Origin: Caecitellus pseudoparvulus
Lineage: Eukaryota; Protista; Bigyra: Bicosoecida
Assembly: GCA_965644315.1 (NCBI GenBank)
Contig: CBFFRQ010000042.1
Location: 620,001-684,000, forward strand
DNA: 64,000 bases
Direction of reading: 5' to 3'
Shown in pieces: positions 31,163 to 38,644 of this stretch (position 1 is the first letter of the stretch; each line of letters begins with the position of its first letter). Under the pieces are notes generated by a model, which saw nothing but the letters and a program-made list of their open reading frames with translations, did not search any database and was not told the origin of the DNA. A program made the translations under genes and the position numbers.

Positions 31163-31853
31163 ATGAGCCTCACATCAACGGCTCGGAAGCAGGTTGCAAG
31201 GCTGTCCATGTCAGCCAGGTGGGCGCCTCACCGTCAGCTCTCCACTCAAGACTTGCCTGATTTGGGAGCATATGGGTACACCGTGGCGAGCATCGAAGGG
31301 CGTGTCAGACGGCGCCGTCGCCCCCGCCCGCCTGGAGGTGAGTGCCTCCCCCCACCTCTGATCTTCGCATGGTCTCCTGTATCCGAGGCTTGCGTCACGT
31401 TCATGCCGTGGCGCCGTTGCAGCGACGGGGCGCACCTCCCGGCCCAAGTCCGAGGAAGACCACTGGGCCGCAGCGGGCGCGTTCGACCACGCGAAGGACC
31501 CCAAGCCAACGAAGACGGAAGCCAACGCTGCCTCAGTAACTGTGCTGCAGTCTCGCACTGTTGTGCGCCAGGCTGATGTGCCGGCGTTCGTGGCCAGCAG
31601 CAAGCGTGCGCTAGCTCGCCTGGTCCAAGCAGTCCCTAGCCTGACGGCAGCTGAGCTTCGAGTAGGTGGACAGGCTGACAGCGAGGGCAATGTGGAGGTG
31701 CAGTCCCACACCACGTGGGCTGGGGAGCCTGCCATGCACTCCCTCCCAGAGGACCCTCTCCTCACCGCGTGGCTGGCAGACATGGCGCAGTTCATGAAGC
31801 AGCGCCCGGAGGTGTCGTCATTCACACAGGAAGTTATCATTCCTGAACGATGA
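31163..31853 (+). CDS. Small putative mitochondrial protein with an ABM/dimeric alpha-beta barrel-like C-terminal domain; join(31163..31337,31423..31853)
   Basis: Presequence-like MSLTSTARKQVARLSMSARWAPHRQLST. An 85-nt GTGAGT..TTGCAG intron joins it in frame to the 31542-31853 ORF. Confidence 0.55.
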
Positions 31854-32108
31854 ACGCGGACAGGTGTCCTGGAGGACTGCGCGCGCTGTTTTCATGTGCT
31901 CAGGCGGTGCCCCAACTCAGTGTCGTGCCAAGCTTTACCCCGCTCTGCCTGTCCTCGGCGTCGAGCGAGACACTCCGCCAACATACCCCACTTGACAGAA
32001 AGAACAGAGGATGTATCATCCTCCACAGTCAATGCACCGAGTGGTTATGGCCTGAGCTGCTTGTAGGAGCATGTACATTGTCTGCGTTTCGGCTGCGTTT
32101 CGGAGGCA

Positions 32109-33461
32109 ATGCAAGCTGCTTTGACCGTGTGGGCGCCCTTTTTGGGTGGTGCATGCCTGCTCGTTTGCATTGCAGTGGGTCTGAATGCTGTTTTGTTCCC
32201 AGCTCTTCCCCTGCAGCGTCCGGGATGGAACTTTCCAGCCGTTTGCGAGACGCTGCGTGGGAGCCTGCCAGCCTTCCCAGCAGCTGTCGTGGACATGGAC
32301 GCCTTCGAAGCCAACGTGGCAGCATACGCGGACATCGCGCGCAAGGCAGGGAAGCGCATCCGCATCGCCACAAAGAGCATCCGTGTGCCACACCTCATCA
32401 GCTCTGTGCTGACGGGACCCCACGCAGACGTGTACAAGGGTGTCATGGCCTTCAGTGTGGCAGAAGCGAGCTTCCTGTGGCGGGAGGCGGGTGTGCGGGA
32501 CATCCTGCTCGCGTACCCAGTCGTGCACGGGCCAGCGTTGGCAGTTGGCATGGAGGCGATTCAGTCTGGCGCAGACATCACCTTCATGGTGGACTGCCCT
32601 GCACACCTGCATGCGCTGCAGGCCGCCGCGACAGAGGCTCGGCTGCAACAGCCTGTGCGTGTGTGCCTGGACGTGGACATGTCCTGGCGCCCGCTGGACC
32701 TGCTGCATGTCGGAGTGCAGCGCTCCGGCCTCCGCACTGCGCCTGACGTGCGGCGTGTGCTGGCTGAGGCTGCTGCGTGCCCGACTGTGGCGGTGGTGGG
32801 TGTCATGGGGTACGAAGCCCAGGTGGCTGGTCTGCCTGACGCCACCACCCTGGGGTGGCTGCCCAACTGGCTGGTGCACGGCATCAAGGCGGTGTCAGTG
32901 CCTCACGCAGCTCGCCAGCGCGCCATGGCCGTGCGGGCTTGCTTGGCGGCGGGCTGCGGACCACCCCTCCTCGTGAACGGCGGCGGGACGGGGTCCGTGG
33001 CCAGCACAGTGCAGGATGCCCTGGTGACGGAGGTGACTGTTGGCTCTGGCCTCCTGCACAGCACCTTGTTCGACCGATACACTGGTCGCGTCTCTCGTCC
33101 CGCTCTCGTCCTGGCGCTGCAGGTGACACGCCTGCCGCAGCCTGGTGTGGCCACTGCACATGGCGGCGGATTCATCGCCAGCGGTGCTGTGGGACGGGAC
33201 AAGCAGCCCAGCGTGGTGCACCCACACGGGGCACGCCCGCTGCAAGATGAAGGCTTCGGGGAAGTGCAGACCCCCCTGCAGTGGCCGAGGGGTGCGCCAG
33301 CCCCTCGCCTGGGGGATGTGGTCTTGGCACGCCCAGCCAAGGCTGGGGAGGTGGCCGAGCACTTCAACACGTACGCCCTGTGTCGTGGCATGCACAGCTC
33401 CGCCTGTGCAGTGCAAGAGCAGGTGCTGACGTACCGTGGGCACGGCATGGAGCTGCATTGA
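32109..33461 (+). CDS. PLP-dependent fold-type III enzyme (D-serine dehydratase/D-threonine aldolase-like) with an N-terminal hydrophobic anchor
   Basis: RIATKSIR (PLP lysine), GVMGYEAQVAG, VNGGGTGS, EVTVGSG, GGGFIASG, EGFGEVQTP, AKAGE and TYRG. Intronless. Confidence 0.85.
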   Translation: MQAALTVWAPFLGGACLLVCIAVGLNAVLFPALPLQRPGWNFPAVCETLRGSLPAFPAAVVDMDAFEANVAAYADIARKAGKRIRIATKSIRVPHLISSVLTGPHADVYKGVMAFSVAEASFLWREAGVRDILLAYPVVHGPALAVGMEAIQSGADITFMVDCPAHLHALQAAATEARLQQPVRVCLDVDMSWRPLDLLHVGVQRSGLRTAPDVRRVLAEAAACPTVAVVGVMGYEAQVAGLPDATTLGWLPNWLVHGIKAVSVPHAARQRAMAVRACLAAGCGPPLLVNGGGTGSVASTVQDALVTEVTVGSGLLHSTLFDRYTGRVSRPALVLALQVTRLPQPGVATAHGGGFIASGAVGRDKQPSVVHPHGARPLQDEGFGEVQTPLQWPRGAPAPRLGDVVLARPAKAGEVAEHFNTYALCRGMHSSACAVQEQVLTYRGHGMELH

Positions 33462-33472
33462 GTTCGGCAGTG

Positions 33473-34418
33473 CTACTCCTGCTCGGAGGGTGGACCCGTC
33501 AGCGTGTCGCCAAAGGCGTCGTGGTATGCCGCCACCTTGGCTCCCACGCCTGCCGTGAACAGTGGGGAGGCGCTGCTGGCAGAGCCCCACGGGTTCCACG
33601 GCGTGTACCCTTCCGCGCTGCCCTGCTTGGATTCTGTGCCCTTGCTCGGCTCGTCAGCCGGCTTGGCCTCTGGTGCGGGGCTGGGTGCTGGGGCAGGGGC
33701 GGGGGCTGGCTCTGGCGCAGGTGCTGGTGCAGGGCTGGGTGCCGGAGCAGGTGCAGGAGATGGCTCAGGTGCAGGCGCTGGCGCAGAGGCTGGTGCAGGG
33801 GCGGGGGCGTCCGCAGCCCCCTCCACATCCTTCAGCGAGAACTCGGCAAAGGCGGACACGGTGTCAGCATCCTCCACGGACACGGCGATGGCCTGGCCGA
33901 TTTTGACATCCTCCGTGCCGCCTGGCACGAGGATCTTGGCCAGGAAGCCTTCGTCCTGGCACTCGAAATCCACCGTTGCCTTGTCTGTCTGCACCTCAGC
34001 CATGACCTCGCCCGGAGCAAGCTCGGAGCCCTCTTCCATGAGCCACTGCACGAGGGTGCCGCTCTCCATCGTCTGCACCAGTGATAACATGAGCAAGGTG
34101 ATGCAGCATGAGGGAATGCGCACAGGTGTTGCGCCCGCCACTCACCGGGGACAGCGCTGGCATGCGGATGACGTCGTGGGCAGGGAAGGTGCTGAGCCAC
34201 CGGGCGGCCTGTGAGCAAACGGGAACGTTCAGTGGTGTGGAGCAGCCGGCTACAGCAAACGCAGCCACGAGAAAAGGTATGGGTAAAACGGGTCGCGCAC
34301 CCTGTGATGGAGGGGAGCCGGGGTGAAGGTTGTGGTTGGGTCTGGCGCAAGGTGCGGGGTGTGCTTGCCCGACGCACTTGGTTGCCGCCCGGCTGCTCCT
34401 GGCTGCCAGCGCAAGCAT
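33473..34418 (-). CDS. Mitochondrial single-lipoyl-domain protein (PDH E2/E3BP-type lipoyl domain, no acyltransferase domain); join(complement 34418..34378,34301,34208..34146,34072..33473)
   Basis: MPALSPTMESG..EVQTDKATVDFECQDEGFLAKIL (lipoyl-Lys in TDKA), a Pro/Ala linker and a short C-terminal domain. The 5' structure includes an inferred 1-nt exon. Confidence 0.85.
33670..33812 (-). repeat. Pro-Ala (APAPAP) coding linker repeat
   Basis: Degenerate 6-bp GCACCA/GCCCCA units encoding PAPAPE/PSP. Confidence 0.8.
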
Positions 34419-34557
34419 GCCTGCAGGCGTGTCAAATTGGAAAAACGTAAAAATGAAGACGAACTTGCGTCTTTGCGTGGTCAGCGTGGGATTTGTTTTG
34501 CGTGCAGGCGCAGCTGGCTACACCCCTGCCGCGTTGCGAAACGCGAGCGAAACCCCG
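34419..34557. promoter_or_regulatory. Putative bidirectional promoter (lipoyl protein / GPATCH11), about 139 nt
   Basis: Head-to-head ATGs flank an A-rich core (AAAAACGTAAAAATG). Inferred from gene layout only. Confidence 0.35.
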
Positions 34558-35424
34558 ATGCCGGGGAGTGCTCCTCAGCGCGGCACCAAGCGTTCTCGTG
34601 AGACGCTGACCTTGATATTGTCCTCAAAGCGTAAGGCACGGCAGATCCCCTCCGTGGGCGGCACGCCGTCAGCCAGCAAGTCTAAGAAAGGGGCAGGGAG
34701 GGGAGAAGCAGGCTTGCAGGAGCAGATGCGCAGCTCAGTGCAAGAGGGGCTGGCACAGGCGCTGCACCCCAGCAACAAGGGCCTGCAAATCATGCAGGCC
34801 ATGGGGTACAAAGGAAAAGGACTGGGCAAGCACGAGAGCGGCATGGAGGCCCCGCTGGCACTGGCGCTGGACCAGGGTCGGCAGGGCCTTGGCTTGCGCA
34901 GGGCAGAAGCAGATGCTGCCGCAAGGGCGGCGCGAGCTGAAGCACAGGCGAAAGCGGCGGCCGCCGAGGCGGCTGCTGATGCGAGGGCTTTTCACCGATA
35001 CCACATGTCGTCGGCGTTCGCTGACCGGCAGGCCGAGGCGGACCTGCGTGCTGCACAGCTGGCGGTGCTGGCGCTGGACGAGGAGGCTGGCTGCACAGGT
35101 GGGCGGGCCATGTGGCCAAGGCAGGGCAGTGCACAGGGTGCGGCTGTGGTTGGTGGGGGGCCGGTGCCCGATGCCGACGTTGGCGACACCTTGTGCGGCT
35201 GTGGTGCATCTGCACCCCCACCGGTCGGGGCGGGAGAGGCTGAGCAGACACACGGCCAGGCAGAGCATCCCGTGTGGCAAGCCTGCTCAACCAGGCAGCG
35301 CCTGGCTGCTGCAGAGGAGTACTTGCGAGCCGTGCACACCTACTGCCTGTGGTGTGCGGAGCGCTTTCCCGACGAGGCTGCATTGCACGCTGCCTGCCCC
35401 GGCCCCGGCAAGGCTGCTCACTGA
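34558..35424 (+). CDS. GPATCH11: G-patch domain protein 11 (CCDC75-like, C-terminal DUF4187-type Cys motif)
   Basis: SNKGLQIMQAMGYKGKGLGK..GRQGLG (G-patch) and YLRAVHTYCLWCAERF..CPGPGKAAH. The start codon is uncertain. Confidence 0.82.
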   Translation: MPGSAPQRGTKRSRETLTLILSSKRKARQIPSVGGTPSASKSKKGAGRGEAGLQEQMRSSVQEGLAQALHPSNKGLQIMQAMGYKGKGLGKHESGMEAPLALALDQGRQGLGLRRAEADAAARAARAEAQAKAAAAEAAADARAFHRYHMSSAFADRQAEADLRAAQLAVLALDEEAGCTGGRAMWPRQGSAQGAAVVGGGPVPDADVGDTLCGCGASAPPPVGAGEAEQTHGQAEHPVWQACSTRQRLAAAEEYLRAVHTYCLWCAERFPDEAALHAACPGPGKAAH

Positions 35425-36170
35425 GCCACAGGCGGCGCTGCCAAGCCACTGGCGCTCTGCACCTCGGCCGCAGTGGGCGCTGCCTGGCGGTGACCTGGCA
35501 CTGCGTGCACTCCGTAGTGCTCCGGGTGCATGAAGGGGGCCAGCGCCAGCAGCATGGCGTGCACGTAATACGCGGTGCGGTCCACCAAGCCGTGCGTGAG
35601 CAGCCCCACTGCGCCGGAGCCTTGCTTGCTGCCGCTGCGGCGGAACACTGCGTCGTCCGCGTCGCCCAGCTCCATGCCCTGTCCCATGAGGCGCACGACA
35701 GGGTCGGGCAGGGGGAAGGAGGCAGTGGTGGCGTGGCCCCAGGCGCCCGACGGCACGTGCACGACAGCCATGCAGGCGAAGCACGACAGGGAGGGGGCGC
35801 TGGTGGGGTCGCCCATGTCCACCACGAGGGGCGGTGCGCCAGCCTTGGCCGGCAGCTCCAGCCCGCCGCCAGGCTGCACACCCCCTTCCATGCCGACGGC
35901 AAAGGTCACAGGCAGTCCTTTGTCCTCCGTCTGCACCTGCTCGCCTGCCATGGCGCTCGCAGCCGTGGCTCGGTTCACGGCGCCCTGCAGCGTCTCCGCT
36001 TGCCCCACTGGCTGGTCAGCCACGCCGCTGGGCACCTTGCACACGACGGTGTCGATCACCGCCGAGGGAAATGCAAGTTGAAAGGCCTGTTTGGCTGCGT
36101 TGACTTTCACAGGGTTCCCGCTGCCCACGGCAATGCGCAGGGTGGCCGGATGTGCCTCTTGGCTGGCCAT
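35418..36170 (-). CDS. yjjX: Inosine/xanthosine triphosphatase (YjjX/PRRC1 family)
   Basis: VGSGNPVK, VPSGVADQP, ETLQGAVNRA, VGMEGG, ELGDADD, KQGSGAVGLLT and R..YY..A..LAL.PF. Confidence 0.9.
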   Translation of the reverse strand: MASQEAHPATLRIAVGSGNPVKVNAAKQAFQLAFPSAVIDTVVCKVPSGVADQPVGQAETLQGAVNRATAASAMAGEQVQTEDKGLPVTFAVGMEGGVQPGGGLELPAKAGAPPLVVDMGDPTSAPSLSCFACMAVVHVPSGAWGHATTASFPLPDPVVRLMGQGMELGDADDAVFRRSGSKQGSGAVGLLTHGLVDRTAYYVHAMLLALAPFMHPEHYGVHAVPGHRQAAPTAAEVQSASGLAAPPVAQ

Positions 36171-36439
36171 TGTTGCGGCGCTGCGGAGGTTTGAATGCCC
36201 TGGGCCACCGTGCGCCAAGCAGTGCTGCGGAGCTCCACACTGCAGGGATTCTGTGCACTTCAGACAGCCACCTTGTTCGATTTAAATGACCTTATACACT
36301 GCTGTGGCGGGGAAGCCGCGCGAATCGAGATACGGAGCAATTTCCGCTGCGGCAGGGTCTGCATTTCCACGCCCCGTGCACTGCCCCAGGGACGCAGAGA
36401 GCCAGAGCCAAGTCAAACCAAGTCCTCCCCTTACATTCA

Positions 36440-38644
36440 CTACCTGTCTCCACCTTTCACGGTTGGCTCGTCACTGCCACTGTCGTCATCGTCTGCCGAA
36501 GCCTGGACCTGGCTCACAGCGCTCTCCTCAGCTCGCATGGCCCATATGTAGGCCCACTCCTTGCCATCCGAGCAAGGGAGGCCCCTGGAGGGATGGGACA
36601 CGTAGCCAGTGAAGACGACAGTCTCCACCCCCCACTCCACGGTGCTGGTCAGGGGCTGCGAGGGGGAGGTGTAGTTGTATGGAGCGTGGGTGGTGTTGGC
36701 GGTCCACTCCAACGTCACGGTGGCTGGGGCCTGCACCTGGTGCATGTTAAGGACGGTGAAGTCCAGGGCAGCCTTACCCGCACACCCCGCCGCCTTCTCT
36801 GTCCCCGTCAGAGCACGGCGGGTGCAGCCGAACACCAGGTGCCCGCTGCCTGCGTTATTCACGACACAGGCCAGCAGCTGCTCAGTGGGAACCTCACCGC
36901 GGCTGCCAGTCGAGGGCCGGGTCGAGGCACCAGGAGCTGGTTCACGCACTGCGGCTGCTGGCGTGGCGGCAGCAGTTGACGGGGCGGCAGCTGCCGTCGC
37001 TCCGGCAGCGGTCCGGGCATCACACAGGCGACTGCTCTCAGCAGCCGACAACACACCAGGCGCCAGGCGGGCCTTGATCCACAACCACGACTCGTCGGTT
37101 GCCAGTTGGTGTTTGCTCACCCCCGACGGTGCGCGCCGGCGTGCCTGCTCCACAGCCTCCAGCACAGCGCCGCGAACGCTGCCCAGCAAGCTCTGCAGCG
37201 GGGCGGCGTCGTGGTGAGCGCCATTGGCGGCAGCCGCGTCCCCTGGCGCCACACCTTTCGTTCGCTGCTTCACCAGCTCCGTCACCGCCTCCTGCAGGTC
37301 AGGGTGCAGCGCCGCCGTATCACAGCCGGCAGCCAGGATCCACGGCAGCAGCCGGGCAGCGCGGGCCCCCTGGGCTGGGTTGTCCAGCTCCATGACGTGC
37401 AGGGGCAGCAGCATGCTGGGGTCGCTGGCTGCCTGCGCCACCCCCACTGCCAGAAGGGTGCAGAGCGCGTGCAAGAAGGCCGTTTGCCGCTGCCGCTTGA
37501 GGGCGTCCGGCACACCTGCGCCGTCCTCGCCGTCGTCGTCGTCGTGCATGGTGGAGTAGAATTCGTGGGCAGCCAGGCCCAGGTCAACCAATGCACCCAG
37601 CAAGCGGGCAACGGCGATGTCGCCCCCCTTGTGGTACGCCTTGGCCTTGCGGGAGTCGGCGAGGAGGAAGTGCAGGGAAGCCAAGACGGGCCCCGCCGCC
37701 ACGGCAGTGCCGCGAATGCACTGCCGAAGGAGGATGTCGTGGCCGTCCTTGTCCACAGTGGGGAAAATGAAGCTGTCCGTTGACTCGAGTCTGCGCATGA
37801 GGCCCGTGTTCCCGGCAGAGGCAGCGGCCAGGTACGCCTTGGGCGCGGCGCTGGCGAGGTCCAGGCGGCAGGAGCTCATGTCTGGCGGCAGGAAAAAGGC
37901 AATGCAAGGCTCGTGGCCGGCGGTGATGGCATCCAAGACACCGGCCTGCGCAGGCAAGGCACTCGCGTCCCCTTGGCCAGCCACGCTAGCAGGGCCCAGC
38001 AGCCGCTCCAGTGTCGGCAGGCGACCGGCGGCGCTGGCAGACCGCGTGACGGTGTACAGGGCTGCGCTGCTCTGCGCGAAGAGCACCTTGAGTTCATCCA
38101 GGGCTGGCCCACTGGCTTCGTGCTTCCCCAGCACCTGCAGGAAGGGAGTCGCCTTCTTCACAAAGCCGCGCAGCTCTTCCTCCAGCTGCTCTTCCAGGGC
38201 ACCGTCATCGCCCTCCGCCTCCTCAGCACCACCCCAAGCCGCACCTTGGTCCTCATCTTCCTCGTACGCAAAGTCCTCCTCGCTCACATCGTCGTAGCCG
38301 TCATTCAAGCCACCCACGGACTCCTCGTGCTGCCCCAGCTGCAGGGCGGTGGGTGCCTGCAGCTGCTCGGCCCGGAGGATGGCCTCCACGATGGAGGGCT
38401 TCATGGCCCAGCGCTTCATGCTCTGCAGAGCACACGTTGCGGCCTGCACGGCGTCCGCCTCCACCAGGTGCTGCAGGAAGCGGTCCAGGTCGGCCACCAG
38501 CACGTCGGCCGGGAAAGCCTCTGCCGGGCACACAAAGCTGTCCAGGTGGGCTTTCCAGGGGTCGGACACATCAGGGGCATGTGTTCGAGCCTCCGTTAGC
38601 AGCTCCTGCAGGGTGCTGGTGGTGGCCGCGCCAGTTGCTGCCAT
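36440..38644 (-). CDS. Hypothetical protein with degenerate ankyrin-like repeats and a beta-rich C-terminal domain
   Basis: Intronless frame of about 734 aa. Ankyrin-like segments ASAAGRLPTLERLL, AITAGHEPCIAFF, AASAGNTGLMRRL and DKDGHD. Confidence 0.6.
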   Translation of the reverse strand: MAATGAATTSTLQELLTEARTHAPDVSDPWKAHLDSFVCPAEAFPADVLVADLDRFLQHLVEADAVQAATCALQSMKRWAMKPSIVEAILRAEQLQAPTALQLGQHEESVGGLNDGYDDVSEEDFAYEEDEDQGAAWGGAEEAEGDDGALEEQLEEELRGFVKKATPFLQVLGKHEASGPALDELKVLFAQSSAALYTVTRSASAAGRLPTLERLLGPASVAGQGDASALPAQAGVLDAITAGHEPCIAFFLPPDMSSCRLDLASAAPKAYLAAASAGNTGLMRRLESTDSFIFPTVDKDGHDILLRQCIRGTAVAAGPVLASLHFLLADSRKAKAYHKGGDIAVARLLGALVDLGLAAHEFYSTMHDDDDGEDGAGVPDALKRQRQTAFLHALCTLLAVGVAQAASDPSMLLPLHVMELDNPAQGARAARLLPWILAAGCDTAALHPDLQEAVTELVKQRTKGVAPGDAAAANGAHHDAAPLQSLLGSVRGAVLEAVEQARRRAPSGVSKHQLATDESWLWIKARLAPGVLSAAESSRLCDARTAAGATAAAAPSTAAATPAAAVREPAPGASTRPSTGSRGEVPTEQLLACVVNNAGSGHLVFGCTRRALTGTEKAAGCAGKAALDFTVLNMHQVQAPATVTLEWTANTTHAPYNYTSPSQPLTSTVEWGVETVVFTGYVSHPSRGLPCSDGKEWAYIWAMRAEESAVSQVQASADDDDSGSDEPTVKGGDR

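Follow-up and report, generated by a model that had tools for sequence, protein, structure and literature searches.

A probable one-nucleotide exon between two short introns of a lipoyl-domain gene in the stramenopile protist Caecitellus pseudoparvulus

The 64,000-nt stretch of DNA analysed here, referred to as the window throughout, carries on its minus strand a gene encoding a lipoyl-domain protein. Read 5' to 3' along this strand, its layout is as follows:

34378 to 34418, minus strand: coding part of exon 1, 41 nt, from the ATG at 34418-34416 to ..ACC AA, with a phase 2 end.
34302 to 34377, minus strand: proposed intron 1, 76 nt, donor GTGCGT, acceptor CACAG, 15 of 20 pyrimidines (C-rich tract).
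34301, minus strand: proposed one-nucleotide exon, a G, third base of codon 14 (AA+G = Lys).
34209 to 34300, minus strand: proposed intron 2, 92 nt, phase 0, donor GTGCGC, candidate branch site CTGAAC, acceptor CACAG.
34146 to 34208, minus strand: exon 3, 63 nt, encoding AARWLSTFPAHDVIRMPALSP.
34073 to 34145, minus strand: intron 3, 73 nt, GTGAGT..GCAG, phase 0, canonical.
33473 to 34072, minus strand: last exon, with lipoyl domain, Pro/Ala linker, conserved C-terminal module and the stop TAG at 33475-33473.

A one-base exon at G34301 had been put forward in a sequence-only reading of the window, and upon re-reading the minus strand its coordinates, its lengths and the translated N-terminus all proved correct. 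Exon 1 encodes the start of a basic, acid-free presequence, which would direct the product to the mitochondrion. Exon 3, which opens with GCC GCC CGG TGG from 34208 and closes with ..ATG CCA GCG CTG TCC CCG, contributes the end of this presequence as well as the first strand of the lipoyl domain, and the last exon matches Pfam PF00364 (E 2.8e-10) from profile position 13 onwards. Intron 1 ends in CATCACAG at 34302 and intron 2 in GCTCACAG at 34209; the single base is preceded by a full acceptor with its pyrimidine tract and followed by a full donor (..CTCCCCTCCATCACAG/G/GTGCGC; slashes mark exon-intron boundaries here and below). Intron 3 served as internal control for splicing in this gene, and the 5' UTR extends to at least 34475. 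In the 30.6-Mb genome the gene is single copy, with all other matches restricted to the low-complexity linker, and the 169-nt interval 34377-34209 matches only itself.

The search for sequencing runs returned none firmly recorded as RNA; four runs carry a metatranscriptomic library label (three from seawater, one from sediment), and several runs of a named organism contain about half of its sequence words, the pattern expected from a spliced transcript. Four runs were mapped onto window positions 31500-37400, namely X1 and X2 of the seawater metatranscriptome study P1, X11 (organism A, study P6) and X12 (study P7), all in the form of Logan contigs, which drop rare forms. Contigs of X1, X2 and X11, i.e., of three runs from two studies, join 34208 directly to 34377, so that exactly 168 nt are absent from the mRNA, one less than the GT..AG interval 34377-34209 of 169 nt. 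The junction predicted from the sequence alone was thereby recovered. Contigs of the same three runs also join 34072 to 34146, omitting 73 nt with GT..AG ends. X1 record 2 and X2 record 20 span 34377 to 34474 and 34475, respectively, positions 34146-34208 are covered by pieces of X1 and X11, and the last exon is covered by contigs of the RNA type as well. Coverage in X1, X2 and X11 is patchy, confined to transcribed parts and zero across 31697-33272, and from this intron-less pattern we infer that the three runs represent RNA. X12, which shows an even depth of about 29 across everything and no splicing, is plainly DNA of a relative with about 3% divergence.

The same contigs gave hints on the neighbouring genes. 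At its 3' end, the lipoyl gene forms a convergent pair with almost no spacer with a plus-strand PLP/alanine-racemase-like ORF (the latter ends at 33461, the lipoyl stop lies at 33475-33473), and a transcript contig of X1 reaches 33454, inside the last codons of this neighbour. On the other side, an X11 contig extends upstream to 34642, past the likely start of a divergent plus-strand G-patch gene (ORF to 35424), which points to 5' ends that overlap or to a bidirectional promoter of very small size in 34419-34642 of the window; this contig may also join two transcripts.

At the 168-nt joint two letters fit either side, the leftmost placement corresponding to TG..AG on the gene strand. A script found three single cuts that fit the mRNA, i.e., 34378-34211 (AG..AC), 34377-34210 (GT..CA) and 34376-34209 (TG..AG), none of which falls in a known intron class (GT-AG, GC-AG or AT-AC). 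The corresponding search for two introns with GT/GC-AG or AT-AC ends gave one solution, 34377-34302 plus 34300-34209 with G34301 kept, and canonical sites are therefore found only in the two-intron model. As a G stands at 34377, 34301 and 34209 alike, the mRNA of the window organism cannot tell which of them was retained, and fits a one-base exon and a boundary-shifted single intron equally well.

Regarding the reading frame, the removal of both introns with one G kept leads, as had been claimed, through an open frame into the lipoyl domain; according to the script, keeping G34301 alone yields a stop-free N-terminus of 35 residues running into ..MPALSP. It had likewise been pointed out that a transcript without splicing remains in frame with 56 extra residues, and in fact unspliced 34209-34377 is open over 56 additional codons, so that its retention in the window genome would lengthen the presequence and not truncate the protein. 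The further statement that this is the only other in-frame option did not hold, since a weak donor GTCGGG at 34373 combined with the acceptor at 34209 (165 nt) and the donor at 34377 combined with a CAG inside the next exon (186 nt) also keep the frame; both cuts are contradicted by the 168-nt skip. Enumeration of all GT/GC..AG pairs by their dinucleotides alone gave hundreds of in-frame combinations and was uninformative, and it was therefore repeated with stricter sites (G at +5 in donors, YAG acceptors), the splice-site expectation being drawn from 14 introns (three of this gene and 11 orthologous ones).

The acceptor-base-donor motif occurs at chance density. CAG-N-GT[AGT][AC]G[TCG] was counted 22 times in the 128,000 strand positions of the window and the stricter CAGNGTRMGY 11 times, with 11.2 expected, and the chance of the motif falling within the 169-nt interval is about 3%. 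An enrichment of GTGCGT was sought in the window and not seen (51 observed vs. 57 expected). By itself, the motif is weak evidence, and the case rests on the RNA and the orthologues.

Homologues were found by searching with the last exon, followed by inspection of the encoding contigs. The nearest named homologues come from brown algae, Phaeothamnion and Aureococcus, in agreement with a stramenopile host, and the following loci were compared with the window:

L002 (GCA_905221625.1, contig CAJNDU010006255.1): about 97% identical to the window, syntenic (CutC, NTPase).
L003: protein 45% identical, syntenic (G-patch, CutC and NTPase genes).
L005: 79% identical to L003, syntenic.
L008: JGI metagenome contig, 52% identical over the full length.
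L004: 53% identical, other genomic neighbourhood.

L001, L006 and L007 were left out of this comparison: L001 ends about 5 nt short of G34301 and is uninformative, L006 is a true E2 paralogue, and L007 is an intron-less 2x long-read contig with a presequence frame off by one, probably due to an assembly or sequencing indel. At positions 2419-2560 of the latter, a presequence-like ORF (MMLRACAQTGLVLRQR..) lies one base out of the frame of the lipoyl domain. A second protein search with P0003 gave no transcript-derived full-length protein of the L003 group.

The close relative L002 keeps the whole arrangement with one extra base in intron 1 and an in-frame TAA in intron 2, and the unspliced region is consequently not coding there; its identity to the window amounts to 99% in intron 1 and 89% in intron 2, with nearly identical exons. 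In L003, L005 and L008, whose proteins are 45-53% identical to that of the window, exon 1 comprises 38 nt (MLQAR..) and ends in phase 2, followed by AT/GTAAGC..(58)..TTTGCAG/A/GTACGT..(61)..TGTGCAG/GTT in L003, AC/GTACGT..(58)..TTTGCAG/T/GTGAGC..(79)..TCTGCAG/ATT in L005 and AC/GTACGT..(58)..TTTGCAG/A/GTGCGT..(78)..TTCGCAG/GTT in L008. Comparison with orthologues had been suggested as a check of the model, and the layout with one base between a CAG acceptor and a GT donor is thus kept in three other lineages, the middle base being G in the window, A in L003, T in L005 and A in L008 (codons for Lys, Ile, Thr and Thr). Across the lineages, the peptide encoded by exon 1 is conserved, orthologues beginning ML.AR..-like, and so is the downstream peptide V/IR....R.FSS.PAHEL...PALSP in L003, L005 and L008, which fixes the second acceptor. 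When donors had to carry G at +5 and acceptors to end in YAG, both conserved peptides could be kept in frame in these three loci only by a one-base exon; the remaining in-frame options delete conserved peptide, and in L008 a further option is retention of intron 2 alone, whose 78 nt are stop-free and in frame. The position of intron 3 holds an intron in L003, L004, L005 and L008 as well.

In a MAFFT alignment the four CAG-N-GT motifs of the window, L003, L005 and L008 share the same columns. Intron identity is 39-55% when the window (or L002) is compared with L003, L005 and L008 and 51-61% among these three, and the motif is unique in each locus of 2.7-5.4 kb, its chance occurrence in the interval being 1.3-2.9% per lineage. 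Such persistence in otherwise scrambled introns is what would be expected if both sites are used. Of the features of a spliceosomal one-nucleotide exon, an extra base in the mRNA, a flanking acceptor and donor, the lack of a fitting canonical single intron, and conservation in orthologues were found, and the interpretation first drawn from the window alone is supported. Intron 1 is 58 nt long in each of L003 (2747-2804), L005 (2240-2297) and L008 (1228-1285), about 60% identical among them, and its length in these loci may be constrained.

Further observations concern the protein and the L005 locus. The C-terminal module W.GS....PL......Y...FG.TL (window 33473-33620) is conserved from the protist to brown algae and was also found in L003 (3440-3576), L004 and L008 as well as in P0010, P0016 and P0024. 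No catalytic E2 domain follows it, and judging from this architecture the product looks like a member of a stand-alone lipoyl protein family. Compared with L003, the L005 locus has a strongly shortened Pro/Ala linker (2730-2960), within which the reading frame changes; the protein as called ends after 120 aa, and the conserved C-terminal module can be read in another frame. This could reflect either the collapse of a repeat during assembly or a further small intron.

Taken together, we consider it highly likely that two ordinary spliceosomal introns of 76 and 92 nt are removed here and that they are separated by the one-base exon G34301. Each intron is equipped with a full donor, a pyrimidine tract and a CAG acceptor. 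An alternative option would be the removal of one non-canonical intron of 168 nt, GT..CA or TG..AG, in a single step, where the retained G is that at 34209 or 34377. Owing to the two letters that fit either side of the joint, the mRNA agrees equally well with such a cut, and neither a partly spliced intermediate nor a lariat or branch point was seen with the Logan contigs, from which rare forms are dropped. However, no placement falls in a known intron class, the neighbouring intron in the same transcript is plainly canonical, and the acceptor-N-donor motif with its pyrimidine tract, kept in four lineages, would be left unexplained, which makes this reading improbable. Still a little less probable is a variant in which the interval leaves in one non-canonical removal, with one lariat and a boundary displaced by one base, and the conserved CAG-N-GT acts as a signal and not as a pair of used splice sites; if true, this would be a mode undescribed for any spliceosome.

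The spliced appearance of the contigs could also originate from DNA (an allele, a strain or a retrocopy) or from a template-switch or assembly artefact at the 2-nt repeat. In favour of this, X1 and X2 are labelled "RNA? (probably DNA)", X11 is labelled as of unknown nature, and the joint carries a 2-nt microhomology. Nevertheless, the same contigs lack the canonical 73-nt intron and end near the gene ends, untranscribed neighbouring DNA is uncovered in X1, X2 and X11 whereas the DNA run X12 is continuous and unspliced, and the identical, frame-keeping joint appears in two independent studies; two bases are, moreover, too short for typical template switching. An intron-less retrocopy was rejected as the source of the spliced contigs because no second copy of the gene exists in the genome, and we regard an origin from DNA or artefact as very improbable. 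Hardly credible at all is the idea that a canonical 169-nt intron, or no splicing, is combined with translation from a later ATG, i.e., the M of ..RMPALSP. It is true that, without splicing, the frame stays open in the window genome and that this internal ATG lies just before the lipoyl domain, but the contigs skip 168 nt, neither 169 nor 0, unspliced L002 is frame-shifted and holds a stop, L005 has GTG (Val) and no ATG at the internal position, and the exon-1 peptide is conserved across lineages.

For the two-intron model, the following course of events appears plausible. Since an exon of one base excludes exon definition, recognition must occur across the intron, which suits introns as short as these. 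Introns 1 and 2 would almost certainly be excised stepwise, as the U1 site of donor 2 (-3 to +6) reaches back over the AG of intron 1 and the two sites could not be occupied simultaneously. Removal of intron 1 first would turn the context of donor 2 from AGG/GT into the better AAG/GT and could favour this order, although either order would yield the same product, in which AA joined to G gives Lys in frame with the remaining presequence and the lipoyl domain. As the base occupies a third codon position in a predicted targeting peptide, little constraint on its identity is exerted by the protein, and its natural variation (G, A, T, A) suggests that this identity may be irrelevant for splicing. 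Skipping of the one-base exon, with 169 nt removed, a frameshift and decay of the transcript, could in principle regulate the amount of lipoyl protein, a role that we consider unlikely.

The locus L004 gave hints on how the arrangement could have arisen. Here, a single phase-2 intron of 106 nt (AT/GTAAGG..TTCGCAG/C) splits the 21st codon before PALSP, the same codon that is split in L003, L005 and L008; in the window it is the 17th codon before PALSP, a difference explained by a 4-codon indel. Intron 1 is thus common to all five lineages, whereas intron 2, in phase 0 after the split codon, is present in four. A maximum-likelihood protein tree places the window together with L003, L005 and L008 (support 91/93) and L004 outside, the tree resting on one short protein and its support being modest. 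Judged from this distribution, the ancestor of the clade probably acquired a phase-0 intron one base downstream of a phase-2 intron that was already in place; the alternative is a precise loss of intron 2 in L004. Tandem duplication as the source was rejected because in every lineage the resemblance between introns 1 and 2 does not exceed that of shuffled sequence, and an origin from an introner or repeat because the introns are unique in the genome. Likewise, the interval does not behave as an introner-like intron, being unique in the genome with dissimilar introns 1 and 2.

Several known systems share features with this arrangement. At the ratchet points of Drosophila, zero-nucleotide recursive sites within very long introns, an acceptor is directly followed by a donor, removal is stepwise, a donor context is regenerated at the end of the upstream exon, and no base is left in the mRNA. 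As in these, an acceptor-donor pair lies inside an apparent single intron with probably stepwise removal, but here the mRNA keeps a base, most probably the one between AG and GT, and each part is a short intron complete in itself, so that the site is not a zero-nucleotide recursive one. In the stwintrons of fungi, an inner intron is embedded in a splice signal of the outer intron; the order of removal is therefore forced and nothing is kept in between. The lipoyl gene resembles them in that two introns in contact would be removed successively. In contrast to stwintrons, its introns lie side by side and are not nested, and each donor and each acceptor is complete already in the genomic DNA.

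Closer are the single-nucleotide exon of Arabidopsis APC11 (Guo and Liu, 2015; PMC4674806), the 1-nt microexon clusters of APC11 and VPS55 conserved across land plants (Yu et al., 2022; PMC8831610) and the one-nucleotide exon of Fusarium CYP621A, described by its authors as the second case and the first from a fungus (Nelson and Syed, 2026; PMC12940212). Following these precedents, the spliceosome is able to splice exons of one base. Like the plant cases APC11 and VPS55, the lipoyl gene very probably has one base between canonical GT-AG introns that is constitutively included, required for the frame and conserved over long evolutionary distances, and which lies near the coding 5' end, where annotations missing the base give wrong N-termini. 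For APC11, A>T and A>G mutants showed that any base is spliced, and the authors likewise infer stepwise removal (PMC4674806). In contrast to the lipoyl gene, the plant cases are directly proven by mutagenesis, RT-PCR and a base differing from the flanking G; further, the upstream intron of APC11 measures 333 nt, while both introns here span 58-92 nt across lineages, the gene belongs to a stramenopile protist of high GC content, and the retained base falls on a degenerate third position within a codon of the predicted targeting peptide. With Fusarium CYP621A the lipoyl gene shares short introns with a combined interval of about twice the usual intron size, a retained G that leaves the mRNA equally ambiguous, and the type of evidence, i.e., orthologue alignment together with public RNA reads across the joint. 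The Fusarium base, however, is the invariant middle position of a conserved Gly codon, whereas here it varies among lineages, and, unlike for CYP621A, the likely origin is revealed by a relative in which this codon is split by one intron only. A one-base exon was further described for the mitochondrial cox1 of placozoans, where organellar introns are involved (PMC5436844). Our literature search yielded spliceosomal cases in two plant gene families and one fungal gene family and none for a protist, and within the literature searched the lipoyl gene very probably has the first spliceosomal one-nucleotide exon found outside plants and fungi.

One-nucleotide exons escape gene predictors and most read aligners. 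The public model P0002 in L002 starts inside intron 3 (MLSLVQ/TMESG) and lacks the presequence exons and the targeting peptide; in addition, a part of the linker around a run of N is left out of the model. The region in question (L002 2500-3850) sits in an assembly labelled Symbiodinium sp. KB8, where it is probably a contaminant from the window protist or a close relative.

An exon of one nucleotide represents the lower limit for the spliceosome, and with the lipoyl gene the phenomenon reaches a stramenopile protist whose introns are very short and would be recognised across the intron. The arrangement has remained stable while the proteins diverged to about 50% identity and provides a natural substitution series (G, A, T, A) at a single base. 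In this context, the gene offers a convenient natural setting in which to study the order of removal of two introns that touch each other.
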